Shown piece by piece: positions 25,131 to 64,000 of a DNA stretch of 64,000 bases (position 1 is its first letter; each line of letters begins with the position of its first letter). Location: contig JAMWBK010000003.1 of assembly GCA_029953675.1 (NCBI GenBank), forward strand, positions 1 to 64,000. The letters run 5' to 3'. Under the pieces are notes generated by a model that did not search any database, was not told where the DNA came from, and saw only the letters and a program-made list of their open reading frames with translations. The position numbers were made by a program, and so were the translations under genes. The DNA is from Rhodosorus marinus CCMP1338 (lineage: Eukaryota; Plantae; Rhodophyta).

Positions 25131-25381
25131 GGAGGAGTTGTTGTCGAGGATTGGAGTTTTGTTTCTTTTTCGGTCGGGAGCGTGTTCGTTTACGGGAAGC
25201 GCTTCCTCTGGTACGCCTTCCCCTCCATTTTCCGCGGGGCGTCGTTTGCATTTGCAACTACTTCTGTCTTCCGGGTGGGTGTGTTGCGGGGCCTTTCCTA
25301 TTTGGGTTGGGTTTGGTCGATTATTCTCTCGGTGCGGTTTCATATTGGTGGTGCAACGTTTCCTTTGCGCATTCCCTCAGG

Positions 25382-26791: not shown

Positions 26792-26822
26792 CGCTCCAGG
26801 CACGGCTGCGAGGTCGCCACCT

Positions 26823-29800: not shown

Positions 29801-29882
29801 CCTTTGGCGATATTCCAGCGACATGCTTTCCGAGGCGCGCCATCGGCGCCTGGGGTTGCATGCTTCCCTCCCTAGTCATTAG
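26823..29882 (+). pseudogene. Family A ORF2 (RT-RLE), copy 1, disrupted
   Basis: LRPIGMVESLRK, QVGVGFSGGCE, VDFRNAFNSVSR, GVQQGDP, HHDD, C-x2-C-x9-H-x4-C, RRHT, FNVESFG. Confidence 0.9.
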
Positions 29883-30109
29883 TTCATCTTCACGCCTTGC
29901 GTAGCGCTTCAGGCTATGCTAGTAAAGTACAGTCCAGTAAAGTCCAGTAGAGCAGGGCTCCGCACCGGATTATTGCAGGCCTTGGGCAAAGCTGGCCAGA
30001 GTGGTAACAAGCGGAGTAAAGCCCAGTAAAGCCCAGTAAATCACAATAAAGCCAATAAAGCCAGTAAAACCACCAGTTGCATACCATGTCCTTATTAGCT
30101 GCTCTTTTG

Positions 30110-33100: not shown

Positions 33101-36100
33101 GAAGTCTCCCTTCAAGAACAGGGCCAGTCGGTCTCGTACTCGCCATCTGCGCTCCGATGTGTGAATGGGGGCCAGAATCAGGCGCGGTATGACCCCCAGG
33201 AAAACCCAAATGACTGTGTCCCGAATGTTGCGAGCCAGGCTCGTGAAGATGAAATCGAGAATGGTTCCAGCTACCAGAAGGTCTCCACGAGGAAGGACGA
33301 CTGGGGGAATGCCCCCACGGAGGGGAAGCGAGCCTCCTTCCAAAGAAATCCACCGCCGGAGCCAACTCCGAAAACGCGTACGCCAAATGCCCCAGTCTCC
33401 GCCCTCCTTCAGGACATAAGACTGTAGATCCATAGGCTGCGACCTCGCAGCCGTGCCTGGAGCGCTAATCGTGCTTCTCCCCCTTAGACCCGGGGGAGTC
33501 GGTCCTCGCTCTCTTACCTCCTATCCGCACCAAAGTCGTGAGCCTCCCACTCCGCGAGGCTCGCGGAACGGATCCCGCGGGCTTCAGCAAAGTAACCTGG
33601 GCGTCCTCCACCGCCATGCCCTCAGTCTGCTCCCCTGCCTCACCACTCTCGCTGGAAGTGGTGCTGGAAGCAGAGCCCTCCAAAATCCCCACCCGCTGCA
33701 GCTCTGTCTTGTAGCGCGAAGTCAGCACAAGTCGCCTCTCCAGATCGAAGAAACTGGAAACCGCCATGCGCAGGTGACGAGGGCCCGACCGGAACCGCGC
33801 CAACAAGATCCTCTCAAGGCGCTGAATCCGTAGCCAATGGATCGCTGCCGCCTTCACGCTGCTCTCATGCTCAGAGAGCCCTGCCGTTTCTCCCGGAGAC
33901 AGGAAATTGCCCGAGAAACGGTCAAAATCCAAGTGCAAAACCACCTGCGGGTTGCAGCGCAGCCACCGGGCGCTCTCAGGCCACTGCTCGGTAGGCTTCG
34001 CCAGCAAGGCCTCCAGGTACTTGGCGGCGGTTGCGGAGACCAAAAACAGCACATCGCGGCCCTCATAGTTTGCGAAGAAGAAATCACCCCTGCTGCACCC
34101 TAACGATTCCGCAAAAGTGTCCCGGAAGTCTCGCATAGACGGAACCTGTCCTCGTGTAGTCTGGGGCCGGACATTTCGCACCCACAGAAATTGGAGAGTG
34201 GTCTCCACAGGTCCATCCTGAGGCTCGCGAGATGGTATGAAACGGAGCATAGCCGCCGTACGTGTGGCAGTGGTGCCCTTCCGCAAGACTGATGCGTACG
34301 AAGCGCCCCCTTGCGGCCACCACGTGCCCCCGAAGTAGCCGGGAGCTGGTGACCACCTGAGGGCTGGTCCAAGAGAGGGAAGTCCACAGCTGCAGTCTCC
34401 TCCACACCGGTTGCCGCACAGTCACCACCACCATTGCCTCGAGTCCCCGAGCGCTGAAGCGCGTTTTGGCCCGGCCTGCCGCTCCCCAACGTCGTACTGT
34501 CCCGCGCAGAAGCAACAGCCCTCGCCTGTCCCGGGACAGGTTCATGTTGATTGACCGGATGTTGACTGCCTTCAGCCAACGCTGCCACTCTGGGGCAATT
34601 CAAATTCTCGTCCGAATTTGAATTTGACCTGGCCAGCAATCCCGATTCCAGCCCACCTAGCTTCTGGGTGAGCTGAGGGAGCACTCCACGATCACTCGCA
34701 GCCGTGATCAGGCTGGTGACAGCGGAGATAAGTGCACGCGCCTGGGTGCCAGAAGCGTCTTCCAAGTCAACCTCGGAAGAAAAGGTGCCGCAGCTGAGGC
34801 GAACACGGAGTCCCCCACCTGGCAGTGCCTCCTTGGGAGGAGGCTCCGTCGAGTGCGGAGATATCCCTACCATCCTGAGGGAATCCGCCAAGGAAACGTT
34901 GCACCACCAATATGAAACCGCACCGAGAGAATAATCGACCAAACCCAACCCAAATAGGAAAGCCCCCGCAACTCACCCACCCGGAAGACAGAAGTAGTTG
35001 CAAATGCAAACGACGCCCCGCGGAAAATCGAGGGGAAGGCGTACCAGAGGAAGCGCTTCCCGTAAACGAACACGCTCGCGACCGGAAAAGAAACAAAACC
35101 CCAAATAATAACTAGGGAGGGAAGTATGCAACCCCAGGCGCCGATGGCGCGCCTCGGAAAGCATGTCGCTGGAATATCGCCAAAGGGTTTACTAGCATAG
35201 CCTGAAGCGCTACGCAAGGCGTGAAGATGAACTAATAACTAGGGAGGGAAGTATGCAACCCCAGGCGCCGATGGCGCGCCTCGGAAAGCATGTCGCTGGA
35301 ATATCGCCAAAGGGAGACACTTAAACGCCTCAAGAGCGCCAAATATTCAGTAGGATGCTCAGCAAAACATTTCCGTGGATTAGCTCGCAGTGGCTCACGA
35401 GCGTCCCCGCTTTTCAACCACTCACACTGGCAGATTTCGAGGTGCGCGCTTCTCTACGTTTATACCTGGGTTTGCATCAGCCGCGCTGGCCTTCCGGGAT
35501 GGGTTCGTCGTGCCCTCTAGGCTCTCAGAGCGAAGATACCGCGGATTTTGGCGCCCAACTATTCGCCAGCTGCCCCGCCGTGAAAGGCACCCGAACCCGA
35601 TACATACGCGGATCTTCAACCTGTTATACCGCGAACTTCGACCTATCGTATGGCAAGCCAGTGTTGAAATTGAACGTGAGAAGCCCCTGCCTGTCGCAGA
35701 CCACCAGAATGATGAACGCCTCGTCGCTGCCCTCGTGGTGACCTGTGACGATAGCCGCCGTACAACGTACGTTGGCCTTGCTGTTCCTAATCCTCAGGGA
35801 GGTCGCTATCTGCGGGCTGCGGGGGAGCGCCGTGGATTTGCCGCTGCCAATATGAGACTTCGCAAAGAGTTGAATATGCAAGTGCCTTGTCCTCCCCAGG
35901 CATTCGTGTTTTAGCTCTAGCTCATCGCCCGGTACCTCAGGCCATTGAGTGCTTTGGGTTTATGGATTCCGTTGGTTCTCGTTGGCTTCGGGAATTGTTC
36001 CGCGAACGCCTCGACCGTCTGTCCTCGTTATTTACCCGTTCAATTTTCTTGCCGTGGCGTATGAATGCTGCTTTTATGTTGGAGGCGCGCGATCTTCGCT

Positions 36101-43652: not shown

Positions 43653-46600
43653 AAACGAATGGTTTAATCGGAGGCTGAAAAAAAAAACCCGAGGGGAAAA
43701 AAAGACTAAGCGCGGCGAAGTACTCGCGCCTCCAACATCAAAGCGGCATTCATGCGCCACAGCAGGAAACTTAAGCGGGTAAACAACGATTGAAGACGGT
43801 CAGGGCGTTCGCGGAACAACTCCCGAAGCCAGCGAGAACCAACAGAGTCCATGAACCCAAAGCACTCAATGATCAGGGGTACCAAGCGATGTGCTAGTGC
43901 CGAAGCACGAACACCAGGGGAAGACAAAGCCCCCGCGTATTTGATCTCTTTGCGGCGTCTCATGCTGGCGGCGGCAGATCCACGGCGCTCCCCCGCAGCC
44001 GGGAGATAACGACTAGCTTGAGGGTTAGGAACAGCAAGATCAACGTATGTGGTACGGCGGCTGTCGTCACAGGTGATCACCAGGTCGGCTACACGGCGTT
44101 CATCATTTTGAAAGTCCGCGACGGGTAAAGGTTTCTCACGTTCGATTTCCAGACCGGCTTGCCGGACTATAGGCCGAAGTTCCCGGTATAACAGGTTCAA
44201 GATCCGTGTATGGCGGCGGGTTCGAGCACCTTTCACCGCCGGGCAACTAGCGAGCAGGTGGGCGCCAAAATCTGCGTTGTCTTCAGTCTGAGAGCAGAGG
44301 GGGCACGACGAACCCATCTCGTACGGCCAAGGGGGCTGATGTAAGCCGAGGTATAAGCGCAGTGAAGTACGCACTTTGTAATCCGACAGTGTGAGTGGCG
44401 GAAAGGCTGGTACGGTCATGAGCCACTGAGAGCTAATAACCCCTCCAAGACTACGTAGGCGGGCGCGAGCGCGAGAAGATGAGACCATCTGCGCGAGGAG
44501 TCGGCCATATGCAGCACGGTGCAAGTCCCAAGAAAGGATATTTTGCAGCGCATCCGTGCGTGCTTGAGCTCGGCTCCCAGCGCGCTGGGAATCATCAGGA
44601 GGATCAACTGGAACTTCTTCTTCTGCGGCAACCACTGGGTCAATCTCCCCTAGAACAGGTTCAGGCGCAGGACGAATCCCCGGGGTGGAGCCTCGAGAGC
44701 GGTCAAATACAGCTCGCCAGTCAGGAAGACGGGGTTGAACGGTTTCGGGGAGACTAGTACAGGAATTCAGGGCGGTTTGGAGCTCCAGAAACAAGTCTTG
44801 GGCGCTTTCCGGTACGCTGGGAAGCAAGACACCCCGCGAGAGGCTCGCCATCAAATTGCGGAACTTCGAGATACCCAAGCTGGTCAAAGTGGGAAGTGCG
44901 GTTCCCCAGGCCCCTACTGCGGCTGCAGGTTGGACCACAACACGATTGCTGAGGCCCAGTCCCCCCAATCGCAATGGGAGGCCTACCTGGGCGCGCACAA
45001 CATCACAGGTGGGTCGCGGCAGAGCGCTCAGCTCTTCATCGAGAAAATACCCCAGGTCACGGAAACTTTCAGCATCCGCACGAGTGGCCAACCACCGGCC
45101 CCAATGAGTTGGAAGTGAGCGAAGCCAATAGGTTAACCGCTGACTGCAACAATACCGAAACAGCAACAACGAGCACTGGAGAAAGCCCGGAGGGAGCCGT
45201 CGAAGCTCTGCAACCAGCTGTCTGTGCTTACCGAGGAGCTGCAGCAACTCGCCTTCAACGAAGGACGGCGACCCGTAGGGGATGCCTAAGTGGACAAAAC
45301 CATCCGGTCTCCAAATATCCTGGAACGACGCAGGTACCTGCTGCTCTTGTGCAGCTACACCTCCCCAGTAGAACGATTCGTGATGATTAACTTCCAAGTC
45401 CCCCCGCGAAGCCAAGGAGCGGAGACTATCATAAGCGAGCGCTAGAGTATCAGGGGGCACAGGAGGCACACGTCGTCGTGGTATGCAACCGTACGAACCT
45501 GCGGGAATTCGGAGCGAAGACAAAGCAAGACGAGTTGTAGTCCACAGGCATGTAGGAAAGGGGACAAGGGATCACAAGAGAGAGAAGCGAAATAAAGACG
45601 TTCGAGGTCCTCAAAGTCGCCGGAAAGGAACATTTGCAGTTTTCGGCGAGGGTGGACCCGGCGAGGATGTGGGTTGAGGGGGACGGTAGAGGAGGTGAGC
45701 ACGAGACGGGGAAAAAAGAACAAGAGTTCCCAGCGAAGGGAGCAGTGAGGGTTCGCGGCGACCTGCTGCCAGAGAAAATCCAACACCAATCCTAGGGGCT
45801 TATGAAGTCGACGAGGGAGCCGTACGGCCGTGATCTGACGACAAAGGGGAAGGGAACCGTCCGGGTAGGAGGCGACAAGATGAGAAAACCACGAGAGAAC
45901 ACGCTCATGCCAGGCTGAGCGGTCACTGGTAAACAGGGGTAGACGGGACGACACGCACGCGGAGGAGGAAGACTCAGACATCGGGCCTCCCCTCAGTCGG
46001 GAAGGCAGATCGAATATCCGGAGGAGGTGCCTCGGAGGGAGGCTCAGGAGCCGCACGACGCTTACTTGGGGGGCGCACGAAGGTACAAAAAGACCTGAAG
46101 AAGGTAGACACAGGGTTTTCAGCAGCGGAGTCTTGACTGAGGGTGTCCAGAGCCAGCGGATTCGGAGAGGCCGATGGTGCTTCTGCCATGTCGGTGTCAC
46201 GAGCCTCGGAGACAGGGCGAGGGGAGGAAGGGTGCTCAAGAGTCGGCTGCAGAAGGTCAAATGCAGGGTGGGCTTCCAGCAGGGTGGCCTCAGTGGAGAG
46301 GAAGGCCTCTAGCGCGGTGCGGAGGACCCCGCGAGGAGGAAAACGCGCGAAGAGGCTCGCCTGTATGCGCGAGAGCCGCGCCGCATGAGTGTGTAGCGCG
46401 ACAACCGAAGCCCGCGAGGCATCCAGGTTTTGCAAGGCCGACGGAGGAACCCAGCCGGCGTCAAAACGATCGAACTCGACAAACAAAGAGACATGAGGAC
46501 GAGTCAGTATCATGTTGGCCAGAGCAGAGCGCTGGGGCGCGGGGGTGGTTACAAGCGATTGAAGGAACTGGTAAGCCGAGTCAGTAACAAGAAAACAGGC

Positions 46601-48380: not shown

Positions 48381-48733
48381 ACTGCCGCGCGACCCGAACA
48401 GCTGTCGGTCCTGTTTTTGCCGTACTTGATCCTGTGGTTGCTGAGAAAGCAGAAGTCCCTCATGATCCTCCAGATGGTGGACCGAGCTCTGCGAGTCACG
48501 TCTCCGCACGCACGGATGCATTGCAAAACCCACGCTTTCTTGGGACTTGCATCGTGCTGCCTACGGCCGACTCCTTCCGCAGATGGTCTCCTCTTTCTGA
48601 GATCGCGCCCGCCGGCGTAGCCTTGGAGGGTGTATCAGCTCACAGTGGCTCATGAGCGTCCCCGCTTTTCCGCCACTCATACTGACAGATTTCGAAGTGC
48701 GTGTTGCTTTTGCGGTGAGCAAAAGCAACATTG

Positions 48734-49023: not shown

Positions 49024-50695
49024 GTGAGTCAGCTGGAGGCGCTACGCGCAGAAGCGGTAGATCCAGACACATACCTCGAAGCCGTCAATGGCGTTGACGG
49101 AAGGGAGTGGAGAGATTCTGTGGACAAGGAGCTTGAGGTATTGAAACGATCAGGTACCTGGCAGTTCTCGGAGGTGCCGGAAGGAAGGAGACCACTGGCA
49201 ACAAAGTGGGTCTTCACCACGAAGAAGGATGCCTGGGGGAAACCCACCAAACGGAAGGCAAGGTTAGTGGCAAAGGGATTTTTACAAAGGCCCGGCGTGG
49301 ATTACATGGAACTATACGCACCAGTAGTCCGATGCAGCAGCCTTCGGCTCCTACTCTCCGTTGTGGTTCAGAGTAAGTTACATTTAAGGCAGTTCGACAT
49401 CGAGGCTGCATACCTCCACGGGAAATTGGAGGAAGAACTGTACCTTCAACTTCCAGAAGGAGTATCACCACCAGGTAAGATGAGAAGGACGGCGTTGAGA
49501 TTGATTAAGGCCATCTACGGCCTGAAGCAAGCTGGGAGAGTATGGAATCAAACCCCTTGACAAAGTAGTCAGGAGAATGGGTCTTCAACCCACGAAACTG
49601 GAGCCTTGTGTGTATCTGAATGAGGAGCGTACACTGTACATCTCAGTGTACGTTGGCTATGCTAGTAAAGTCTAGTTATTAGTTCATCTTCACGCCTTGC
49701 GTAGCGCTTCAGGCTATGCTAGTAAAGTCCAGTAAAGTCCAGTGTACGTGGACGATCTTATCATGGCAGCACCGGACAGTAAGGACATCGATCGCGCCAT
49801 AGAGCTCATCAAGGCTCACTTCCCGGTGAAGGCACTAGGCGAGGTCAGAGACTTGTTGGGCGTGAGATTATCGTACGACAGGGAACTGGGTGTGCTGAAG
49901 CTAAGCCAGCCTGGACTATCTCAGCGAGTCTACAACGAAGCTGGCGTAGGTCGATTTGTTAGTACACCCCTCGACGCAGGAAGCGTGGTCGGTGCGGATG
50001 ACGGAAAGGAAATACGACAAGCGGGTCAGTATCGAGCTCTTGTGGGAAAGGTGATGTATCTGGCAACAATGACCCGACCGGATCTCAGCTACGCGGTGAG
50101 GTACCTGGCACAATCCTCAGCGTCCCCGACTCAACGGAGATGGAAAAGCCTGATGCACCTGTGCAGATATATTGGCGCAACGGCCAATGCGGAGCTGACG
50201 TACAGGACTACTTCGACGCCTGAAGTCGTCAGCTACAGCGACGCGAGCTTCGGACACGAGCAAGGCAGGACATCTGTCACAGGCTACACAACATTGTATG
50301 GGGGAAACCTAATTAGCTGGGGGTCGAAAAAGCAGAGCATCGTAGCGCAGTCGACCTGTGAGGCGGAACTCATTGCAGCAAACGAAGGGGGACGATTCTC
50401 GGTATGGGCAGATAACCTACTACATGAGTTAGGCGAGGTGACAGAAGCACCTCTGATGAAAGTGGACAACAGCGGGGTCTTGGCGTTAGTAACGACCAAA
50501 GGAGTGACTCCGAGAACAAAACACTTGGAGATCAAGCAACTGTGGCTACAAGATCAAATTCAACGGGGGAGCGTGAGAATAGAGTACTGTCCTACGGAAT
50601 ACATGATCGCTGACCACCTGACGAAGACGGTCACCGGCAAACGACTGAGGGAGCTCACAAAGTTATGTGGATTAGAGTTGGTTGGATCCGCCTGA
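49024..50695 (+). pseudogene. pol: Copia pol RT-RNaseH remnant, frameshifted at 49553-49556 and interrupted at YVDD
   Basis: KARLVAKG, QFDIEAAYLHG, LIKAIYGLKQAGRVW, YVDD, RPDLSYAV, YSDASF, STCEAELIA, TKHLEIK. Confidence 0.92.
49654..49739 (+). mobile_element. 86-bp family A 3'-end insertion within Copia RT
   Basis: 18-nt tail piece plus a full 3'UTR and tail; flanked by CAGTGTACGT at 49644-49653 and 49740-49749. Confidence 0.92.
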
Positions 50696-51435
50696 GGGGG
50701 AGGATGTTGGATCAGCAGCAGTCAAGCATCAAATCTGAGCAAGTCACAGGGGAGGAATTGTCCGTGGGTACAAACAGGTTCGGATTGTAAGCAGCATGAT
50801 ATGGGTACAAACCAGTTCTAGGTTGTCAGTCGTTAGGCCTAGAGTTGCTTGGGTATCGTTGACCTGCCTTGTTAGGACTTGACAGGTATTTGAGAGTTGG
50901 TTTCACCTTGTAGTCGATGGGATAGCTTGAAGTAAAAGATGACCAAAGAGGTCCAAAGGTTATCCAGAAATCAGTAGTCTGAAATTTGCGGTGAGCAGAA
51001 GCAACAGTGCGCACTTCTTTACGTTTACACCTCGGTTTGGAGCAGCCGCCCTGGGCTTCCCGAGATCGCGCCCGCCTGCGTAGTCTTCGAGGGTGTATCA
51101 GCTGGTTTTATTCGCGTAGCCTAAAGCGCCACGCAAAGCATGAAAGGGAACTAAGAACTAGGTAGGGAAGCGTGCAAGCCCAAGCGTCAATGGCGCGCCT
51201 CGGCAAGCATGCTGCTCGAATATCGCCACAGAGAGACACTTAAACCCCGCTAAAGTTCCAAGTATTCAACAGGATGCTCAGTAAAACATTTCCGCAACCA
51301 CTCCAAACCCGAGTTCTCCACGTGACCAAGGCTTTACGCAATGAAAGGCTTGAACCGGTGGCAGCGACCCTCAGCGCGAGGCACACTGGACTTTACTAGC
51401 ATAGCCTGAAGCGCTACGCAAGGCGTGAAGATGAA

Positions 51436-54400
51436 CTAATAACTAGGGAGGGAAGCATGCAACCCCAGGCGCCGATGGCGCGCCTCGGAAAGCATGTCGC
51501 TGGAATATCGCCAAAGGGAGACACTTAAACGCCTCAAGAGCGCCAAATATTCAGTAGGATGCTCAGCAAAACATTTCCGCAACCACTCTAAACCCGACTT
51601 ATCCACGTGACCAAAGCTTTCCACAATGAATGGCTGGAACCGGTGAGAGCGACCCTCAGCGCAAGGCAGACTGGCCATGCTCTCAGCATACCGTCGTTCC
51701 TTAACTCTTCGAAGGGCTGAAGCCGCGGCCCCCCGGCGGCGGGCGGCTGCGGTGAGGTGGGCGCTGGCCACGGGGCAGGTAATCGCAAGGTCCACATATG
51801 TTGAGCGTCTGGTAGCAGCGTCGGAGACGAGGAGATCGGCTATACAACGGGGCGGTGCAGAGTCCGAGATGGATCTGGGCAGTTCCGACTCAACCTCAAC
51901 CGTATGCCCTATCCGAGTCAAAGATTCGCTGAGGATGTACTTGAGGCGAGTGTGACGCCTCGTACGGAGACCTCGCAACAGTCCGCAGGAACCCAGGAAG
52001 TGGTAGCCACAAGCGTCAATCCGGCTCTCACATCCCTGACAGAAAGACGGCCGATTAGAGTGCCACGGAGCCTGTGGCAAACCGAGATAGATCCGTGCGG
52101 CAGAACGGAACTGGAAAGCATCGAGACGATGACTCAATGACGACGGTAGAGTGGTTAACCACAAGTGCGAGAGGTGGCCTCCCATGCCGCGGAGACGAGC
52201 GGCAGTGGTAGGCGGCGTGAGAGGAGAATTGAGCATGACTGTGTGAGCGGCACTGTGTTGGCCCCAGGTGAGGCTATGTTGAATCACATCAGTGCGGGAG
52301 CTCCACAATCGGCTCAAACCCGGGTAGTCTGCAACAGGGGACCCGGGGCTAGCCTCTCCGTCATCGGCAAGAACTCGGTCGAGGGGAGAATCCTCAATCG
52401 CTTCAGCTCGTCCCCATAACAGCTCCCTCCAGGAACGAAAGCGGGACCGATTTGCGTCCGGCACGGCGTTGCACCTCCTGAACGCGTGTTGAAGACCATC
52501 ATAAATTGTCAAAAGCGGGGGCGGCAGGGTCACTGGATCCTCGTTGGTCAAAGCTCGAGCCAAGAGGCAGGCACTTCGCATCCGGAAGGTCACCAACGTT
52601 CGCAGCGCGGTAGCCCAGGAGGCAACCGCCGCTGGCGAGCATACCAGCCCACGGTCTGCGACGCCGAATCCCCCTAATCGCAACGGTAGAGCGATCTGTG
52701 CACGAATCAAGTCCCTGTCGGGAGCAGCTTCAAGATCGAGGGCTCATCCAAGAGCGTTCCCCAGTGTTGCAGGGTCATTTCGTCGGCTTTAGCCGCGATC
52801 CACGAGCCCCAAGCTGGAGGCAGGCTGCGCAACCAGTAGTTGAGTCTGGGACCGGCACAAAAGCGGGAAAGCAAGCAGGCCGATTGCAGCATGCTGTCGG
52901 GTAGGTGCTCAATGGCGTCGGTGAGTTGCTTGTGCCGTGCCAAAACTCGCTCGCAGGATGCTTGGACAAAGTTGTCAGTCCCCAATCCGACGCCGTGGTG
53001 TTCGAACCCTTCACGTTCGCTGATTAGTCGCAGAGTGGGTGGCAGAGAGTTCAGCGACACGTCCCTCGGGGGGGAGAAAGCGACATTTTTCTGTTTCCAC
53101 AGTCAAACCGACGCGACGTGCAATCGCTTCGATCGCGGTCAGTCCCCTAGCCAGGGTGTCAGGGGTGCCCAGCAATGTTACGTCATCGTGGTACGCGCAG
53201 ATTCGAAGATCCGAGACCTCAGTCGAAAGACGTAAAAGTACGAGCTGTAGGGCACAGGCATGAAGAAGAGGTCCGCAAGGGTCGCCTTGTTGGACGCCAG
53301 TATGTGCTTGAAAAACAGTGCCCTCCGTTGTCAAGTAGGGGAGGCTCTCCCCTCCGTAAATACCCGATAGAAACGGCCACGCCTCCGGAAACACACGTCG
53401 GAGCACCTCTAGCGCATGCGTCCGCGACACGCTGTTGAATGCGTTCCGGAAATCAACCACCAAGACTCCCCACTCCGGCCTACTGGCGCGTTCTAGCTCG
53501 ATCCCATGGGTGATCAGTTCGCAACCCCCAGAAAATCCCACCCCTACTTGCAAGGGCGCCATAAAAGCTGTGACGCGCTGGCGAAGGCGCTGGCATAGCC
53601 ACCTCCCGGCTAACTTCCGTAGGCTCTCCACCATCCCGATCGGCCGGAGACGCGGGTGGGCCGGCTGCTGGTCAGGTTTCGTGAGCAAGCAAAGCTGTGC
53701 CTGCCGGAGATGTTCCCATGGCGCGGACGCACCCGATACGCCCTGGAACAACTTGTTAAGGATCCTCAGAAGCGCGCTCTGGCCAGGCTGGCTCAGGGCC
53801 TGCAATAGCTCTGTTCTTAGTCCGGAGGGTCCAGGACAGCGTCCCCGACGCGAGGTACGAAGCAAATCCTCCAGGTCAGACTCACTGAGCGTCAGATCGA
53901 TGCGAAACCTGGCCAACTCCGGACGGTCCAAGAATACCTCGAATTCAGGGGACAAATCCACGTCGGACTCAGGGAACAAAGACGACACCGTCTGGGCGAG
54001 ACTATCATCGTAGGGGAGGACAGGCGCCTGGCCCTCCAAAACCCGCGCCGCTCGACTTAAATCGCCCACTGCTACCAATTTCTGTACTCGAGCTGGCACG
54101 GGCGACACTGTGCCATGCCGAGTCCGACGGGCGGATGGTGCTGACGACGCCAAATAGCTGCGCTGTAGTACTTCGAAGTCTCCCTTCAAGAACAGGGCCA
54201 GTCGGTCTCGTACTCGCCATCTGCGCTCCGATGTGTGAATGGGGGCCAGAATCAGGCGCGGCATGACCCCCAGAAAAACCCAAATGACTGTGTCCCGAAT
54301 GTTGCGAGCCAGGCTCGTGAAGATGAAATCGAGAATGGTTCCAGCTACCAGAAGGTCTCCACGAGGAAGGACGACTGGGGGAATGCCCCCACGGAGGGGA

Positions 54401-54507
54401 AGCGAGCCTCCTTCCAAAGAAATCCACCGCCGGAGCCAACTCCGAAAACGCGTACGCCAAATGCCCCAGTCTCCGCCCTCCTTCAGGACATAAGACTGTA
54501 GATCCAT
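51436..54507 (-). CDS. Family A ORF2, RT plus Zn-knuckle plus RLE (~1023 aa after correcting two homopolymer indels)
   Basis: All RT motifs with YHDD, CCHC knuckle, RLE; 3072 bp with compensating +1/-1 indels. Confidence 0.85.
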
Positions 54508-54539
54508 AGGCTGCGACCTCGCAGCCGTGCCTGGAAGCG

Positions 54540-55949
54540 CTAATCGTGCTTCTCCCCCTTAGACCCGGGGGAGTCGGTCCTCGCTCTCTTACCTCCTATC
54601 CGCACCAAAGTCGTGAGCCTCCCACTCCGCGAGGCTCGCGGAACGGATCCCGCGGGCTTCAGCAAAGTAACCTGGGCGTCCTCCACCGCCATGCCCTCAG
54701 TCTGCTCCCCTGCCTCACCACTCTCGCTGGAAGTAGTGCTGGAAGCAGAGCCCTCCAAAATCCCCACCCGCTGCAGCTCTGTCTTGTAGCGCGAAGTCAG
54801 CACAAGTCGCCTCTCCAGATCGAAGAAACTGGAAACCGCCATGCGCAGGTGACGAGGGCCCGACCGGAACCGCGCCAACAAGATCCTCTCAAGGCGCTGA
54901 ATCCGTAGCCAATGGATCGCTGCCGCCTTCACGCTGCTCTCATGCTCAGAGAGCCCTGCCGTTTCTCCCGGAGACAGGAAATTGCCCGAGAAACGGTCAA
55001 AATCCAAGTGCAAAACCACCTGCGGGTTGCAGCGCAGCCACCGGGCGCTCTCAGGCCACTGCTCGGTAGGCTTCGCCAGCAAGGCCTCCAGGTACTTGGC
55101 GGCGGTTACGGAGACCAAAAACAGCACATCGCGGCCCTCATAGTTTGCGAAGAAGAAATCACCCCTGCTGCACCCTAACGATTCCGCAAAAGTGTCCCGG
55201 AAGTCTCGCATAGACGGAACCTGTCCTCGTGTAGTCTGGGGCCGGACATTTCGCACCCACAGAAATTGGAGAGTGGTCTCCACAGGTCCATCCTGAGGCT
55301 CGCGAGATGGTATGAAACGGAGCATAGCCGCCGTACGTGTGGCAGTGGTGCCCTTCCGCAAGACTGATGCGTACGAAGCGCCCCCCTTGCGGCCACCACG
55401 TGCCCCCGAAGTAGCCGGGAGCTGGTGACCACCTGAGGGCTGGTCCAAGAGAGGGAAGTCCACAGCTGCAGTCTCCTCCACACCGGTTGCCGCACAGACA
55501 CCACCACCATTGCCTCGAGTCCCCGAGCGCTGAAGCGCGTTTTGGCCCGGCCTGCCGCTCCCCAACGTCGTACTGTCCCGCGCAGAAGCAACAGCCCTCG
55601 CCTGTCCCGGGACAGGTTCATGTTGATTGACCGGATGTTGACTGCCTTCAGCCAACGCTGCCACTCTGGCGCAATTCAAATTCTCGTCCGAATTTGAATT
55701 TGACCTGGCCAGCAATCCCGATTCCAGCCCACCTAGCTTCTGGGTGAGCTGAGGGAGCACTCCACGATCACTCGCGGCCGTGATCAGGCTGGTGACAGCG
55801 GAGATAAGTGAACGCGCCTGGGTGCCAGAAGCGCCTTCCAAGTCAACCTCGGAAGAAAACGTGCCGCAGCTGAGGCGAACACGGAGTCCCCCACCTGGCA
55901 GTGCCTCCTTGGGAGGAGGCTCCGTCGAGTGCGGAGATATCCCTACCAT
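54540..55949 (-). CDS. Family A ORF1 (469 aa), copy 3, intact
   Basis: Open frame from MVGISP to GSKGEKHD-stop. Confidence 0.85.
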   Translation of the reverse strand: MVGISPHSTEPPPKEALPGGGLRVRLSCGTFSSEVDLEGASGTQARSLISAVTSLITAASDRGVLPQLTQKLGGLESGLLARSNSNSDENLNCARVAALAEGSQHPVNQHEPVPGQARAVASARDSTTLGSGRPGQNALQRSGTRGNGGGVCAATGVEETAAVDFPLLDQPSGGHQLPATSGARGGRKGGASYASVLRKGTTATRTAAMLRFIPSREPQDGPVETTLQFLWVRNVRPQTTRGQVPSMRDFRDTFAESLGCSRGDFFFANYEGRDVLFLVSVTAAKYLEALLAKPTEQWPESARWLRCNPQVVLHLDFDRFSGNFLSPGETAGLSEHESSVKAAAIHWLRIQRLERILLARFRSGPRHLRMAVSSFFDLERRLVLTSRYKTELQRVGILEGSASSTTSSESGEAGEQTEGMAVEDAQVTLLKPAGSVPRASRSGRLTTLVRIGGKRARTDSPGSKGEKHD

Positions 55950-57411
55950 CCTAAGGGAATCCGCCAAGGAAACGTTGCACCACCAATATGAAACCGCACC
56001 GAGAGAATAATCGACCAAACCCAACCCAAATAGGAAAGGCCCCGCAACTCACCCACCCGGAAGACAGAAGTAGTTGCAAATGCAAACGACGCCCCGCGGA
56101 AAATCGAGGGGAAGGCGTACCAGAGGAAGCGCTTCCCGTAAACGAACACGCTCGCGACCGAAAAAGAAACAAAACCCCAATCCTCGACAACTAGCATAGC
56201 CTCGATACCCCACTTGAACCCACCGAGGCACACTGGCCATACTCTCGTTCCTTCACTAGGCGAAGGGCCGAAGCAGCTGCTCCCCGGCGGCGGGCGGCGG
56301 CCGCGAGATGGGCGCTTGCCACAGGGCATGTAATCGCGAGGTCAACATTAACCGAGCGTCTGGCGGCAGCATCGGAGACAAGGAGATCTGCGATACAGCG
56401 CGGCGGTGCCCTATCCGAGAACGATCTGGGTAGTTCTGATTCCACCTCAACCGTATGCCCTACCCGAGTCAAACATTCGCTGAGGATGTACTTGAAGCAA
56501 GTGTAACGCCTCGTACGAAGACCTCTCAACAGTCCGCATGAACCTAAGAAATGGTAACCACAAGCATCGATCCGACTCTCACATCCCTGACAGAAAGACG
56601 GCCGATTAGAGTGCCACGGAGCTTATGGCAAACCCCGGTAAATCCGTGGGGCGGAGCGAAACTGGAAGGCATCCAGACGGTGACCCAGTGATGACGGCAG
56701 GGTCGTTACTATCATAGCCTGATGCGCTACTCAAAACGTAGAAGGAAACTGGGGACTAGGAAGAGGCGTATGTAAGCCCAGGCGACGGTAGAATGCTTTC
56801 TCAACAGGTGGAACGCTTTTTCACTAGAACTTAGTTCCTTTTCACTACAGCGGCTTCGATACAGTGAATAAATTTGATACACTAAGAGCATTTTGCGCAG
56901 TGAGCGACTTCTAAGTCAAAATCACTTTCAATCAAAAATATTTAACGGATACACTACAACCAAAAATTACTGTGAACTTCATCAACGCCTGTTGCAGAGC
57001 ATCATAGATACTCAAAAGCGGTGGCGGAAGGGTCACGGGCTCTTCGCTAGTCAGTGCTCTAGCCAAAAGGCAGGCACTTCGCATCCGAAAACTCACCAAG
57101 GTGCGAAGCGCGGTAGCCCAGAAGGCGACCGCCGCAGCCGAGCCTACGAGTCCATGGTCGGCCACTTCAAATCCGCCTAATCGTAAAGGTAGGGAAATCT
57201 GGCCACGAATTAGGTCCCTGTCGGGAGCCGCTTCCACATCCAGGGGTTCATCCAAGATCGTTCCCCAGTGCTTCGGCGTCGCCTCTCGTCCGCCATGTCT
57301 GCCATCCACGAGCCCCAGTGCGGTGGAAGGCTTCGCAGCCAGTAATTCAGTCGGGCCGGGACAAAAGCGGGAAAGCAGGCAAGCCGATTGGAGCATGCTG
57401 TCGACATTCCA

Positions 57412-57528
57412 GCGACATGCTTTCCGAGGCGCGCCATCGGCGCCTGGGGTTGCATGCTTCCCTCCCTAGTTATTAGTTCATCTTCACGCCTTGCGTAGCG
57501 CTTCAGGCTATGCTAGTAAAGTCCAGTC
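57412..57528 (+). mobile_element. Family A 3' end inserted antisense into family B
   Basis: ATTCCAGCGACATGC..GGCTATGCTAGTAAAGTCC; no clear TSD. Confidence 0.88.
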
Positions 57529-59127
57529 CGTTAGGCGCTCAATGGTGTCAGTGAGCTGCTTATGGCGTGCTGAAACTCGTTCGCAAGAGTCTTAGACAAA
57601 GTTGTCACTCCCCAAACCGACGCCATGGTGCTCGAGCCCCGCACGTTCACCAAAGGCTCGGAGACTAGCTGGCAGGGAACCCCCCGAAACTTCACGTGCG
57701 GTGAGAAAACGGCACTTTTCGGGTTCCACGGTCAGATCTACTCCACGTGCGATTGCTTCGATCTGGGTCAATCCCCGAGCCAAGTTTTCCTCAGGGGTGC
57801 CCAGCAACGTCACGTCGTGATGGTAGGCACAGATGCGAAGCTCCGGCACCTCAGCCGCCAGTCGCTGGAGCACGAGCAGCAAGGCACAGGCGTGAAGTAC
57901 CGGCCCACAAGGATCACCCTGCTGAACGCCAGTACGTGCTGCAAAAACAGAGCCCTGCGTTGTCAAGTACGGGAGGCTCCCCCTTCCGTAAATACCGGAT
58001 CAGAACGGCCAAGCCTCTGGGAATACCCTTCGAATCACCTCCAGAGCATGCGTCCGCGAGACGCTGTTGAACGCCTTACGGAAGTCAACCACCAAAACGC
58101 CCCAATCCGGCCTACTGGCTCGCTCGAGGTCGATCGCATGAGTGATCAGCTCGCAACCCCCAGAAAATCCCACCCCTACCTGCCAAGGCGCCATAAAAGC
58201 GGTGACTCGCTGGCGTACGCGCTGGCATAGCCACCTCCCGGCGAGTTTCCGTAGACTCTCGACCTTGCCGATCGGCCGGAGACGCGGGTGTGCCGGCTGG
58301 TGATCGGGCTTCGTTAGCAGGCGAAGCTGTGCCAGTTGCAGATGGTCCCAAGGGGCAGATGCACCCCCTGCACCCTGGAACAGCGTATTCAGGATCTTCA
58401 CCAATGCATTCTAGCCAGGCTTCCTCAAGGCCTGCAGTAATTCCGTTCGTAGCCCAGAAGGTCCAGGGCGGCGTCCACGCCGGGAGGTCCAGAGCAAATC
58501 CTCCAGATCAGACTCACGGAGAGTCAGGTCGATGCGGAACCTGGCCAACTCTGGACGGTCTAAGAATGCCTCGAATTCGGGCAGCAAGTCCACGTCGGAC
58601 GAGGAACAACGCCGACACAGTCTGGTCGAGGCTCTCGTCGTTGGGGAGTACATTCACCTGGCCCTCCAAGACCCGTGCCCCTCGACTCAGGTCACCAACC
58701 GCCAACAATTTCCGCACTCGAGTCGTCCGAGGCGAGGCTGTCCCAGCACGAGTCCTCCGGCCGGATGCCTCGGATGACGCCAAGTAGCTCTGCTGCAACA
58801 CCTCAAATTCCCCCTTCAGGAACTTGGTCAGTCGTTCTCGGACGCGCCATCTGCTCTCCGATGTGTGAGTGGGAGCCAGAATCAGGCGCGGCATGATCCC
58901 CAAAAATTCCCACATAACGACGTCCCGTGGATTACGCGCCAAACTCTGGAAAATAAAATCCAGGATTGTCCCGGCCATGGAGAGCTCTCCTCGAGGGAGT
59001 ACAAGGCGCGGAATCCTTCCCCGGAGGGATAGGGAGCCTCCTTCCAAAGAAATCCATCGCCGGAGCCAACTCCGCAGGCGCGTGCGCCAGATGCCCCAGT
59101 CTCCGCTTTCCTTCAGGACATAAGACT

Positions 59128-60128
59128 GGCTTTACTAGTATAGCCTGAAACGCTACGCAAACCGTGAAAAGGAACTAAGAACTAGGTAGGGAAGCGTTCA
59201 AACCCAGGCGCCAATGGCGCGCCTCGGCAAGCATGCTGCTCCAATATCGCCACAGAAAGACACTTAAACGCCGCAAAAGTACCAAGTATTCAACAGGATC
59301 CTCAGTGAAACATTTCCGCAACCACTCTAAACCCGACTTCTCCACGTGAGCAAAGCTTTCCACAATGAAAGGCTGGAACCGGTGGGAGCGACCCTCAGCG
59401 CGAGGCAGACTGGCCATACTCTCAGCATACCGTCGTTCTTTCACTCGGCGAAGGGTCGAAGCAGCTGCTCCCCGGCGGCGAACGGCGGCCGTGAGATGGG
59501 CGCTTGCCATAGGGCATGTAATCGCGAGGTCAACATTAACTGAGCGTCTGGCGGCAGCATCGGAGACAAGGAGATCTGCGATACAGCGCGGCGGTGCCCT
59601 ATCCGAGAACGATCTGGGTAGTTTCGATTCCACCTCAATCGTATGCCCTACCCGAGTCAAACATTCGCTGAGGATGTACTTGAAGCGAGTTTGACGCCTC
59701 GTACGAAGACCTCTCAACAGTCCGCATGAACCTAAGAAATGGTAACCACAAGCATCGATCCGACTCTCACATCCCTGACAGAAAGACGGCCGATTAGAGT
59801 GCCACGGGGCTTGTGGCAAACCCAGGTAAATCCGTGGGGCGGTGCGAAACTGGAACGCATCCAGACGGTGACCCAGTGAACCCAGTGATGACGGCAGGGT
59901 CGTTAACCACAAATGTGATAGATGGCCTCCCATGCCGCCGAGGCGCGCGGCGGTAGTAGGCGGTGTGAGGGGAGAGTTGAGCAAGATTGCGTGAGCGGCC
60001 CTGTGTTGGCCCCAGGTGAGGCTATGTTGAATCACATCAGTGCGCGAGTGGCGATCCCGCCGGGAATTGAACCCGGGTCTCCCGCGTGACAGGCGGGTGT
60101 ACTGACCCCTATACGACAGGAACCTCAT
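59128..60128 (-). mobile_element. tRNA-Asp / family B 3'-end chimeric retrocopy (SINE-like architecture), 1001 bp
   Basis: 5 nt, then a 75-nt tRNA, then ~920 bp of B 3' end and tail; TSD GACATAAGACT at 59117-59127 and 60129-60139. Confidence 0.9.
60049..60123 (-). tRNA. trnD-GTC: tRNA-Asp(GTC), full length with 3' CCA, interpreted as a reverse-transcribed copy
   Basis: Cloverleaf: GTTCCTG/CGGGATC acceptor (one T-T mismatch), GTA/TAC D stem, CCCGC-CT GTC AC-GCGGG, CCGGG-TTCAATT-CCCGG, G73, CCA. Confidence 0.93.
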
Positions 60129-61734
60129 GACATAAGACTGCAGGTCCATCGGCTGCCACCTCGCAGCCGTGCCCGGCGAGCTAATCGTGCTTTTCCCCCT
60201 TAGACCCGGGGGAACCGGTCCTATCGCGCTTGCCTCCTAACCTCACCAAACTGGTCAACCGGCCACTCTGCGAGGCTCGCGCGATGGCTCCCCCGGGATT
60301 CAACAAAGTAATAGGGGCGTTCTCCACCGACATGCCCACCGGCTCCCCTTCCTCGCCACTCGCACTGCAAGTGGTGCTTGGAGCGAAGCCCTCTAATACT
60401 CCCAAACTCCGTAGCTCTGCCTTGTGATTTGAGGTCAGCACAAGGTGCCTCTCCCGGTCAAAAAGGTAGAGGCGGCTGCGCGCAGATGGCGTGGACCCGA
60501 CGCAAAACGCTCCAAAAGTATTCGCCCCATGCGATGAATGCGAAACCAATGGATGGCTGCAGCTTTCGCACTGGTGTCGTTGTCGTGCTCAGATAGGCCT
60601 ACTGTTTCTCCGGGAGAGAGGAAAGTGCTCGAAAAACGAATGCAATACGACCTGGGGTTGAGAACGCAACCAGCAGGCGCTCTCCGGCCCCTGCTCGGTA
60701 GGCTTCTCTAGCAGGGCCTGCAGGTATGTGGCCGCGGTTTCAGTGACCACAAAGAGGACATCGCGACCCTTACAATTGGCGAAGATGAAGTCTTCGCGGC
60801 TACACCCCAAGGACACTCGGCAAAAGTATCTCGAAAATCTCGCATGGACGAGACCTAGCCCCGTGTAGTCTGGGGCCGAACGTTGCGCACTCAGAGGAAT
60901 TGCAACTTAGCCGCCGCAGGTCCGCCCTGCTACTCGCGAGAGGGCAAAAATCTTAGCATAACCGCCGTCCGTGCGGCTGTGGAACCCTTCCGCAAAACTG
61001 AGACGTAAGAAGGGCCCCCCCTTGGGACCACCGCGTGCCCCCGCCGTGGCCTGGAGCAGTGCTGCCCCATGACGGGAAAATCCGCTCCCGCTGAGGGAGC
61101 ATTCGAAGGATTAGGCAGCTCTGCACCCCTCTCCGAAGAGGCGCCAGCCGCGGAACCACCTTTGTCACCTCCAGATCCCGGAGCTCCATCGCCTGTCCGG
61201 GGACAGGTTGTTGATTGACCTGGTGAAGTTGACTGTCTTCCGTTTCAACTTGGCCACCCAGCTGGAATTCAAATTCTCACCCGACCAGCCGCCTAGCTTC
61301 TGGGTAAGCTGAGGAATGACACCTCGATCGCCCGCGGCCGTGATCAGGCTTGTTACAGCAGAGAGCAGGGCACGCACTTGCGTAGCAGAGGTGCCCTGTA
61401 ACTCCACCTGCGTGGAGAAAGGGCCCGCACGAAGAGACACTCTGTGTCCACCCTCAGTAGACACCTCTGCCCGCGGGATCTCCGGACCCTCAGGAGTGGA
61501 GTGCGGAGGGACCCCGGCCATCACGGAATAATGTGTTGAACAGGAGTTTCTCGAAGGAACCCGACGAAAAAAAAACGCACAAACCAGCGCTTCAGACCTA
61601 AAACCTGGATCGAACACACCCAAAGGGGGAGAATCCTCGACAAGCAACCACGAAACCCGAAAAAGCGGGGGCAAAGACAGCGAGAGGATGCGCCTGCAAC
61701 GAGGAACACTCTCGAAGCTTAACACGACTCCACT

Positions 61735-62973: not shown

Positions 62974-64000
62974 GGGCTGTACTGGGCTTTACTGGCTTTA
63001 CTGGCTTTACTGGGCTTTACTGGACTGGACTTTACTAGCATAGCCTGAAGCGCTACGCAAGGCGTGAAGATGAACTAATAACTAGGGAGGGAAGTATGCA
63101 ACCCCAGGCGCCGATGGCGCCTCGGAAAGCATGTCGCTGGAATATCGCCAAAGGGAGACACTTAAACGCCTCAAGAGCGCCAAATATTCAGAAGGATGCT
63201 CAGCAAAACATTTCCGCAACCACTCTAAACCCGACTTATCGACGTGACCAAAGCTTTCCACAATGAATGGCTGGAACCGGTGAGAGCGACCCTCAGCGCA
63301 AGGCAGACTGGCCATGCTCTCAGCATACCGTCGTTCCTTAACTCTTCGAAGGGCTGAAGCCGCGGCCCCCCGGCGGCGGGCGGCTGCGGTGAGGTGGGCG
63401 CTGGCCACGGGGCAGGTAATCGCAAGGTCCACATATGTTGAGCGTCTGGCAGCAGCGTCGGAGACGAGGAGATCGGCTATACAACGGGGCGGTGCAGAGT
63501 CCGAGATTGATCTGGGCAGTTCCGACTCAACCTCAACCGTATGCCCTATCCGAGTCAAATATTCGCTGAGGATGTACTTGAGGCGAGTGTGACGCCTCGT
63601 ACGGAGACCTCGCAACAGTCCGCAGGAACCCAGGAAGTGGTAGCCACAAGCGTCAATCCGGCTCTCACATCCCTGACAGAAAGACGGCCGATTAGAGTGC
63701 CACGGAGCCTGTGGCAAACCGAGATAGATCCGTGCGGCAGAACGGAACTGGAAAGCATCGAGACGATGACTCAATGACGACGGTAGAGTGGTTAACCACA
63801 AGTGCGAGAGGTGGCCTCCCATGCCGCGGAGACGAGCGGCAGTGGTAGGCGGCGTGAGAGGAGAATTGAGCATGACTGTGTGAGCGGCACTGTGTTGGCC
63901 CCAGGTGAGGCTATGTTGAATCACATCAGTGCGGGAGCTCCACAATCGGCTCAAACCCGGGTAGTCTGCAACAGGTGACCCGGGGCTAGCCTCTCCGTCA
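62974..64000 (-). mobile_element. Family A copy 4, 3' part, runs off the window end; long compound tail
   Basis: Near-identical to the 3' ends of copies 2 and 3; tail of about 7 (AGTAAAGCC/GCCC/GTCC)-type units at 62974-63040. Confidence 0.92.

Follow-up and report, generated by a model that had tools for sequence, protein, structure and literature searches.

How does a complete tRNA come to stand, base against base, in front of the 3' end of a retrotransposon, and has the resulting composite gone on to move as a unit? Both questions are raised by an insertion at 59113-60140 (minus strand) of a stretch of 64,000 nucleotides, referred to below as the window. Read on the minus strand, the insertion runs in the order target-site duplication, a single G, a 72-nt tRNA-Asp (GTC), CCA, about 920 nt of element 3' end, and the duplication again. 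The upstream copy of the duplication occupies 60125-60140 and is followed, by direct reading of the sequence, by the G at 60124. Next come a full-length, intronless tRNA-Asp of cytosolic type (60052-60123), the CCA that directly adjoins the element (60049-60051), the 5'-truncated 3' end of an RLE-class non-LTR retrotransposon (59129-60048), and the downstream copy of the duplication, CAGTCTTATGTCCTGA (59113-59128). The tRNA is in sense and lies 5' of a sense element, the two together forming a unit of 995 nt. The sequence that received the insertion, copy IV, itself belongs to the same element family and is older and diverged. It aligns upstream at 60141-61375 and downstream at 57526-59112 (both minus strand) and is 75-81% identical to the young reference copy.

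ARAGORN reports one tRNA in the 64-kb window, a tRNA-Asp with anticodon GTC at 60049-60123 (minus strand, 75 nt including CCA), and the Rfam tRNA model RF00005 matches 60052-60123 over its full length, positions 1-71 of 71, scoring 55.5 bits where the gathering threshold is 29. These two results bear out the complete 72-nt tRNA-Asp plus CCA of the preliminary description. Its further claim, that leader and trailer are both missing, also holds, in that there is no trailer and only 1-5 nt at most precede tRNA position 1; the RNA is represented in processed form, in sense and with its native 3' end. No other tRNA-like sequence was found in the window by Rfam at E<=1, and a sub-threshold match to MIR161 in the same range was regarded as chance. 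An alternative register for the tRNA (acceptor TCCTGTC/GGCGGGA) was rejected, as it would remove positions 8-9. The acceptor stem contains one non-standard pair, U2.U71, which is probably a later substitution; should it not be a later mutation, the mismatch is left without explanation. A metagenome scan with the 3' half of the tRNA returned two contigs with a genuine tRNA-Asp gene of a different marine eukaryote. This related nuclear gene is identical over the 39 nt of the search pattern, which runs from the anticodon arm to the 3' strand of the acceptor, and there ACGAAATTTTT rather than CCA follows, with a T-run trailer. Since a gene identical over the pattern does not encode CCA and does have such a trailer, we read the CCA at 60049-60051, on sequence grounds, as the post-transcriptionally added 3' end of a mature tRNA.

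On the other side of the CCA, homology to the element begins at the very next base, as judged from alignment with five longer copies; the junction reads ...GGCGGGATCGCCA|CTCGCGCACTGATG..., with the CCA side to the left and the element side to the right. Only one of seven bases on the tRNA side matches the element sequence replaced there, and no bases are shared across the join. Given this low match, and homology that starts after the CCA, the junction lacks microhomology. One duplication encloses the tRNA and the element part together, and no repeat flanking either part alone was found at the locus. The direct repeat, CAGTCTTATGTC, is exact over 12 nt (60140-60129 and 59128-59117), and by a repeat search it reaches 16 nt, one of them mismatched (60125-60140 versus 59113-59128), the upstream bases at 60125-60128 (ATGA) agreeing with the target CTGA at three of four positions. 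Three paralogous copies of the host sequence run uninterrupted through the site as ...CTACAGTCTTATGTCCTGAAGG..., namely copy I at 26850-26860 (plus strand, by alignment), copy II at 33409-33424 (minus strand) and copy III at 54483-54498, the last two by both BLAST and alignment; at these two, BLAST aligns the flanks with an overlap of 16 nt. All three empty sites are paralogous (75-80% identical), neither allelic nor orthologous. If the duplication is taken as only 12 nt, an unexplained stretch, ATGAG (60124-60128), is left between it and the tRNA. The 16-nt repeat with one mismatch and the 16-nt overlap of the flanks suggest that most of this stretch is probably decayed duplication, which leaves the G at 60124, probably an untemplated addition. 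The preliminary description had given an 11-bp duplication followed by ATGAG; the repeat itself stands, and its length and the extra bases, apart from one G, do not. Its central observation, a tRNA and a retrotransposon 3' end inside one duplication, is confirmed by the repeat search and the three empty sites. A single duplication around both parts, at a site that is empty in three paralogs, argues for a single event.

The element part, from 60048 to about 59129, shares 84-90% identity with the 3' ends of five or more longer family copies in the window and corresponds to reference positions of about 3879-4795 of 4795, the whole retrotransposon being ~4.8 kb long. An intact 290-codon ORF remnant (60047-59178, minus strand) encodes a CCHC motif and an RLE endonuclease domain; its stop codon (59177-59175) is followed by a short 3' UTR and by one partial unit of the (CCAGTAAAGY)n repeat with which other family copies end. 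Alignment to the longer copies thus upholds what had been described as ~920 bp of family 3' end with 3' UTR and tail, the tail amounting to one partial unit. Because this tail ends in CAGT, which are also the first four bases of the duplication, the 3' limit of the element is ambiguous by 4 nt (to 59125). The chimera's element part falls in an older subfamily, not in the young one of 99% identity, and carries 13 private substitutions in 661 compared columns (~2%). Such a level is consistent with one mismatch in the tRNA and one in the duplication, and the ~2% of substitutions accumulated since insertion probably include both the U2.U71 mismatch and the single mismatch of the duplication.

To which class of retrotransposon does this family belong? 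The element ORF matches Pfam RVT_1 at 6e-16, and in the PDB its reverse transcriptase (RT) matches R2 proteins best (2e-11), with L1 ORF2p behind them at about 6e-8. Towards the C-terminus, a CCHC motif precedes a PD-(D/E)xK restriction-like endonuclease, with C87, C90, H100, E137, D155, D170 and K200 invariant in the C-terminal alignment and R115-H116 nearly so. A profile of this domain, built from the window copies and 13 distant homologs, matches the endonuclease region of R2 (9nl3 and 9dou, E=2e-15; 8gh6, 2e-7); the similarity is significant only as a profile, the single-sequence domain reaching an E-value of about 0.4. No APE endonuclease (Pfam Exo_endo_phos) was found in the ORFs of the long copies in the window, and Pfam detected no APE domain in eight full-size homologs of about 950-1450 aa. 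Taken together, the R2 matches of the RT, the endonuclease profile at E=2e-15 and the failure to find an APE domain bear out the earlier assignment to the RLE class, and the protein sequence places the element among the R2-like non-LTR retrotransposons. The 591-aa RT/RLE ORF is not an orphan. A word-index protein search with this query came back empty, but a full HMMER scan with the same query found 1823 relatives, which marks the empty result as a false negative. At the protein level the nearest relatives are transcripts from Rhodosorus marinus, a red alga, and a literature search found no paper on Rhodosorus retrotransposons. The locus also draws notice to an RLE LINE family, apparently red algal and so far uncharacterised, whose tail is a 10-nt repeat. 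As to target choice, nick sites follow (C/G)AG(T); one site in another repeat family was used by two independent insertions, and others lie at several unrelated sites.

Further insertions of this family, which is represented by at least 20 fragments in the 64-kb window, are also composite. A four-piece concatemer at 30253-35375 (minus strand, from alignment and repeats) lies within one duplication, AGCTAATCCA; its pieces are a 3' fragment of 188 nt, 85 nt from within the 3' UTR, a near-full copy of 4795 nt and a further 3' fragment of 60 nt, the last two each carrying a tail. The site is empty in two paralogs (44431-44437 and 48631-48640). At 49646-49745 (plus strand), alignment reveals a two-piece insertion in one duplication, CAGTGTACGT, made up of a T and two 3'-end fragments, one of 17 nt and one of 62 nt, the latter with a tail. 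Copy III, a full-length young copy aligned at 51385-56224 (minus strand) with duplication GTGCCTCG, has 33 extra nucleotides at its 5' junction (56224-56192), including GCTATGCTAG from the element's own 3' UTR. Judging by these other multi-piece insertions within single duplications, template jumping onto RNA 3' ends looks habitual for this RT. Not every array need be a jump, and the reading of all tandem 3'-fragment arrays in this way was dropped: at 10956-11004 a young, 100%-identical fragment stands behind an old copy of 83% identity, an order better explained by later insertion into the tail. A crude automatic search around 15 other copies gave clean duplications for only a few. Copies as short as 49-62 nt integrate, which implies that the last ~60 nt suffice for initiation.

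We conclude that the insertion is very probably a chimeric retrocopy, produced in one target-primed reverse-transcription (TPRT) event by an RLE-class (R2-like) non-LTR retrotransposon, and that the host of this event was probably a red alga related to Rhodosorus. The element endonuclease would have nicked an older member of its own family just past ...CAGT, where the target CAGT could pair with the element RNA, whose repeat tail ends in CCAGT. The RT would then have reverse-transcribed ~920 nt from the 3' end of this RNA, a step to which the anatomy of the insertion bears direct witness. To judge from the same anatomy, it would next have left the element RNA for a mature cytosolic tRNA-Asp, resumed at the 3'-terminal CCA without any pairing, copied this tRNA to nucleotide 1 and added one untemplated base, or five at most; joining of the cDNA to the upstream target would yield the duplication of 12-16 bp. 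A sense tRNA 5' of a sense element is the order expected if minus-strand cDNA ran from the element RNA onto the tRNA 3' end. A jump of the RT onto a mature tRNA, copied to its first base, had been proposed beforehand, and the single duplication, the empty sites and the CCA abutting without microhomology all agree with that proposal. The RT of B. mori R2 is known to make sequential template jumps and to produce full-length cDNAs of native modified tRNAs (PMC12140624). The product here is a dead-on-arrival insertion within another dead element. Within the window, this locus would probably be where the chimera arose, as opposed to a descendant of one made earlier.

The same anatomy could, in principle, have been reached by way of an already amplified composite, that is, a tRNA-Asp-headed SINE or long non-autonomous element mobilised by the RLE LINE and transcribed by Pol III from the internal promoter of the tRNA. 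We consider this very unlikely. The head does contain a good B box, GGTTCAATTCC, and an A-box region, TCGTATAGGGG, that is typical of tRNA-Asp and matches six of the nine specified consensus positions; the 3' UTR and tail, the end that the RT uses, are those of the autonomous LINE family, of which copies of 49-62 nt integrate; and a template-switch model of SINE birth is available in the literature (PMC5786205). Nevertheless, the tRNA is the sole tRNA-like sequence in 64 kb among the family fragments (Rfam, E<=1). A search of 5.8 billion proteins, including Rhodosorus transcriptomes, with the junction peptide retrieves ordinary element copies only and no second chimera, and the metagenome scan with the tRNA 3' half gave real tRNA genes only and no chimera. 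Within the 995-nt unit, two sense-strand TTTT runs at unit positions 846 and 954 (59278 and 59170), 150 and 42 nt before its 3' end, come ahead of the end of the 3' UTR and the tail, and the element part is an arbitrary 5' truncation with an intact ORF fragment rather than a trimmed SINE body.

Less likely again is an origin in two events or a rearrangement, whether a tRNA retropseudogene and a truncated element inserted side by side, ectopic recombination, or mis-assembly. The locus lies in a dense nest of insertions, family tails attract new insertions (as at 10956-11004), and the junctions and structure are known from one assembly. The duplication, however, is shared by both parts, with none for either; the join sets the 3' CCA of the tRNA base-exactly against internal element sequence; the paralogous empty sites lack both parts; and mis-assembly would not produce a 16-nt duplication that matches the empty site. 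The least likely of the three alternatives makes the tRNA a primer, whose 3' CCA-OH began plus-strand synthesis on the first-strand cDNA and whose RNA was later turned into DNA. Priming of this kind would give an identical linear order, sense tRNA-CCA joined to sense element, and tRNA fragments have been reported to prime L1 ORF2p reactions (bioRxiv 10.1101/2025.02.02.635956). At this junction, though, complementarity between the 3' end of the tRNA and the cDNA is lacking, with one match in seven bases, and an extra RNA-to-DNA conversion step would be required, whereas homology-free end-to-end jumping is documented behaviour of R2-type RTs (PMC12140624) and also accounts for the sibling concatemers of element fragments.

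With the template-jump reading preferred, there remains the suggestion in the preliminary description that the chimera is a candidate newborn SINE. What defines a SINE is that it amplifies as a unit, and neither the 64-kb window nor the protein and metagenome searches yielded multiple dispersed copies of the composite with different duplications. By its length and its T runs, the unit also falls short of one that Pol III could transcribe through to the 3' end. A single tRNA-like sequence, no second chimera, a length of ~1 kb, internal T4 runs, private substitutions at ~2% and membership of the older subfamily all tell against the suggestion, which we do not retain. There is only a slight chance that the chimera or a genomic sibling functions as a non-autonomous element, driven by Pol III and mobilised by a red algal LINE of the RLE class; were this so, it would represent a tRNA-headed SINE at the outset of its formation, in a class of LINE and a eukaryotic lineage with few or none described.

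The locus belongs instead to a kind already known, the LINE/small-RNA chimeric retrocopies, of which it has all the marks: one duplication, a processed sense RNA, a truncated LINE with tail and an empty (paralogous) site. For the U6/L1 chimeras of mammals, a template switch of the LINE RT during TPRT is the accepted cause (PMC4476161; bioRxiv 10.1101/2025.02.02.635956). These and other small-RNA/LINE-1 chimeras likewise join a processed sense RNA base-exactly to a 5'-truncated LINE within one duplication. They differ in that the enzyme is of the APE-class L1 type rather than RLE-class, the tail is poly(A) rather than a 10-nt repeat, and the captured RNA is U6, whereas here it is a tRNA, in an apparently red algal host. 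Closer in content are the tRNA/LINE-1 chimeras known from 21 primate loci, in which tRNA and LINE sequence also lie within one duplication (9-19 bp); these mostly contain half-length antisense tRNAs and are attributed to twin priming (bioRxiv 10.1101/2025.02.02.635956). The tRNA described here is, by contrast, in sense, of full length and terminated by CCA, features that speak for the RT having jumped end to end onto a mature tRNA that was intact. In the retropseudogenes of the Magnaporthe grisea MGL-LINE, copies of two or three RNAs are fused directly in one insertion, which is attributed to single or double template jumps (PMC2104539). To the tripartite examples among them our four-piece concatemer at 30253-35375 runs parallel, although there the host is a fungus, the LINE is of another clade and the partner RNA is WEIRD, not a tRNA.

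The template-switch model for SINE2 elements predicts, as its first step, just such a tRNA head joined to the 3' tail of the partner LINE (Kojima 2018, PMC5786205); unlike SINE2, the present case is one copy of ~1 kb with T4 runs ahead of its 3' end and no trimming of the middle body. The chimera and the concatemers together illustrate the first step of the model, and the chimera, being too long and having internal T runs, also illustrates why most such products stop there. There is ample in vitro documentation of template jumping by R2-type RTs, and tRNA sequencing now makes use of it in OTTR, in which the RLE-class RT of Bombyx R2 jumps onto RNA 3' ends without homology and copies tRNAs end to end (PMC12140624). 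The OTTR enzyme is an engineered Bombyx R2 acting in vitro, whereas here we have the in vivo genomic footprint of a distant relative. Genomic footprints of template jumping are mostly known for the APE-class L1; this locus supplies an in vivo case for an RLE-class element, the base-exact capture of a full-length, CCA-bearing tRNA beside sibling concatemers.

Read on the minus strand from 60140 to 59113, the chimera comprises CAGTCTTATGTC, ATGAG, a 72-nt tRNA, CCA, about 920 nt of retrotransposon ending ...GGCTATACTAGTAAAGC, and CAGTCTTATGTC repeated, which is the order of target-site duplication, ATGAG, tRNA-Asp, CCA, element end and duplication given in the preliminary description. ARAGORN calls a tRNA-Asp (GTC) including CCA at 60049-60123 (-), the sole tRNA called in the whole window, and the Rfam tRNA model aligns end to end with 60052-60123 (55.5 bits; gathering score, 29), with U2.U71 as the only non-standard pair. 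The anticodon, T and D arms are of the eukaryotic cytosolic tRNA-Asp type. In a metagenome scan, a 39-nt pattern spanning the anticodon arm through the acceptor 3' strand was matched exactly by a genuine nuclear-type tRNA-Asp gene in two marine contigs, where the discriminator base is followed by ACGAAATTTTTCTTTTT, without CCA. Because this pattern-identical gene lacks CCA, that of the chimera is best read as a post-transcriptional addition. The marine gene (L001, 329-426, plus strand; L002, about 3664-3761, minus strand) carries a 28-nt D-loop insertion, a non-canonical intron position, and a T5 trailer, and is not called by ARAGORN.

The remainder of the chimera (59125-60048) is 84-90% identical, by BLAST against the window, to several members of a single family at their 3' ends. 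These include three copies of about 4.8 kb, namely copy I (25140-29933, plus strand), copy II (35104-30310, minus strand) and copy III (56191-51385, minus strand), as well as a copy cut by the window end (64000-63024) and a 1.1-kb truncated copy (62886-61818). As aligned with five family copies, identity begins at CTC(G/C)CGCACTGATG, the first base past CCA; upstream of this point, full copies read ...GATTGTGGAG whereas the chimera reads ...GGGATCGCCA, and no microhomology is found at the CCA/element join. From the junction to the stop, 290 codons are open and encode the element's C-terminal domain.

The chimera is flanked on both sides by copy IV, an older and diverged member of the family, and the three long copies retain the insertion site intact (...GGATCTACAGTCTTATGTCCTGAAGGAGGGCGG...) as paralogous empty sites. 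By BLAST, the two flank alignments share a 16-nt overlap at 33409-33424 and 54483-54498, and a repeat search lengthens the duplication to 16 nt if one mismatch is allowed (plus strand, TCA[G/T]GACATAAGACTG). The direct repeat described earlier thus stands, but its length of 11 bp does not: the duplication is 12 nt where exact and most likely 16 nt, if one mismatch is accepted. With 12 exact matches given, three or more matches in the next four positions have a chance probability of about 0.05. ATGAG is likewise present before the tRNA, but most of it is probably decayed duplication; a 16-nt duplication leaves a single G before tRNA position 1. Neither the tRNA alone nor the element part alone has a duplication of its own at this locus. 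Copy IV (about 51107-61375, minus strand) seems to have been a single full-length old element, now interrupted by three nested insertions, namely the tRNA chimera (59129-60124), an opposite-strand fragment of 129 nt (57399-57527) and the 4.8-kb young copy III (51385-56224).

RVT_1 is the only Pfam match in the long-copy ORFs, which show no APE domain. Against solved structures, the reverse transcriptase matches R2 proteins best (2e-11), ahead of L1 ORF2p, and the C-terminal domain alone is collinear with R2 over the CCHC, RH, E, PD and D motifs, at an E-value of about 0.4. Among 1.84 billion representative proteins, a full HMMER scan identified 1823 relatives. Rhodosorus marinus, a red alga, supplies the closest of them as transcripts (68-89% amino-acid identity), and a Pyropia vietnamensis protein comes next. 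By protein similarity, Rhodosorus or a close relative is the probable source of the window. Pfam scans of eight full-size relatives (about 950-1450 aa) gave a central RVT_1 in seven and no match at all in the eighth, with no APE domain in any. Their C-termini carry the same domain, and in an alignment of two window copies with 13 relatives C87, C90, H100, E137, D155, D170 and K200 are invariant and R115-H116 nearly so. In the chimera, RQ replaces this RH motif (residue 116; 59700-59705, minus strand), one of the private changes of a dead copy. The C-terminal profile matches the R2 endonuclease region (9nl3 and 9dou, E=2e-15; 9nl2, 2e-12; Bombyx R2, 8gh6, 2e-7), and this match places the element in the RLE class, the partner class named in the preliminary description; the assignment is at the level of class rather than clade. 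The CpG observed/expected ratio is 0.95, indicating no depletion.

Composite insertions recur elsewhere in the family. The array at 35375-30253 (-) contains four pieces inside a single duplication AGCTAATCCA. In order, these are a 3' fragment of 188 nt, an internal piece of the 3' UTR of 85 nt, a tailed copy of 4795 nt and a tailed 3' fragment of 60 nt; each matches the young reference copy at 97.6-100% identity. Its target is empty in two flanking-repeat paralogs (44431-44437 and 48631-48640), and it looks like the product of serial template jumps in one integration event. At 49646-49745 (+), a T, a 17-nt 3'-end fragment and a 62-nt 3'-end fragment with tail lie inside a single 10-nt duplication CAGTGTACGT; this insertion is directly upstream of a copia-type RVT_2 ORF (49742-50692). 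At the 5' junction of full-length copy III, 33 additional nt (56192-56224, minus strand) lie inside the duplication GTGCCTCG; 10 of them (GCTATGCTAG) derive from the 3' UTR of the element itself, and the other 23 read GTGGGTTCAAGTGGGGTATCGAG. Such footprints, as expected from continuous cDNA synthesis over discontinuous templates, suggest that jumping is habitual in this family. The Bombyx R2 reverse transcriptase performs such synthesis in vitro and has been used for full-length cDNAs of native tRNAs (PMC12140624). A tandem array is not always a jump, because at 10956-11004 a young 49-nt fragment lies behind an older copy; family tails also draw later insertions.

The family ends in (CCAGTAAAGY)n, units of about 10 nt in variable number finishing ...CCAG(T), without poly(A), as at 62975-63029, 10999-11040 and 29928-29950; behind the copy ending at 63024-63029 the repeat runs on below to about 62975. 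The element end in the chimera is ...AGTAAAGC and the duplication begins CAGT, so that four bases are assignable to either tail or target. The same ambiguity occurs at three other resolved insertions: CAGT|GTACGT at 49646, CCAGT|GTGCCTCG at copy III and (C/G)AG|CTAATCCA at the array. This sharing at four insertions fits priming in which the nicked target would pair with the tail of the element RNA. Preferred target sites are usual for RLE elements. The array and old copy IV, from two different LINE subfamilies, occupy the same position in another repeat family (...GAG|CT(A/G)AT(C/A)CACCCTC..., at 30245-30252 and 51099-51106), which lacks a Pfam match and whose copies near 44431 and 48631 are empty. 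Such sharing hints at a preferred site here. The long copies at 25140-29933 (+) and 30253-35375 (-), 97-99% identical, lie tail to tail about 320 bp apart and form an inverted repeat of roughly 10 kb.

The anatomy of the chimera gives its parts and their order, from which the jump itself is inferred. During TPRT, the enzyme would copy about 920 nt of the element RNA from the 3' end, leave it, resume on the terminal A of mature tRNA-Asp and copy it to G1, adding about one base, after which the cDNA would join the upstream target. Order, orientation and single duplication support the jump onto a mature tRNA proposed earlier. The same linear order would result if the tRNA had primed second-strand synthesis rather than serving as template, but this fits less well, there being no complementarity at the join and the sibling concatemers being left unaccounted for. 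Neither two independent insertions nor mis-assembly accounts for one 16-nt duplication agreeing with the empty site.

Within the sequences searched, the evidence is against the proposal that the template-jump product is a newborn SINE. Although at least 20 family fragments lie in the window, ARAGORN and Rfam find no further tRNA-like sequence there, and a 90-aa junction-spanning peptide matched four proteins, none chimeric, all being ordinary element copies with normal upstream sequence ...LSRLWSSRTDVIQ; neither search yielded a further copy of the junction. A hairpin at 8084-8213 (+) weakly resembles the plant MIR161 precursor in Rfam (36 bits; gathering score, 90; E=3.5e-4), probably by chance. 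The 995-nt chimeric unit has sense-strand TTTT at positions 846 and 954, both before the 3' UTR end and tail required by the reverse transcriptase. The chimera falls in the older subfamily: it shares 95% identity with copy IV, in which it is inserted, and 84-87% with the young copies, whose identity among themselves is 99%. Private substitutions number 13 in 661 compared columns, and this rate of about 2% would suffice to produce the one mismatch in the acceptor stem and the one in the duplication. SINE status is unsupported rather than impossible, since the B box is intact and family copies of only 49-62 nt integrate.

Chimeras of a small RNA with a LINE, enclosed in a single duplication, have been established both for L1 (U6/L1 among them) and for a fungal LINE (PMC2104539). 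Unlike these, the present locus involves an RLE-class enzyme and a probable red-algal host. Template switching has been put forward as a model for the origin of SINEs (PMC5786205). Most of the tRNA/L1 chimeras described in 2025 carry half-length, antisense tRNAs and were attributed to twin priming (bioRxiv 10.1101/2025.02.02.635956), whereas the tRNA described here is full-length, sense and bears CCA. The locus is a natural trace of a reaction otherwise documented in vitro.
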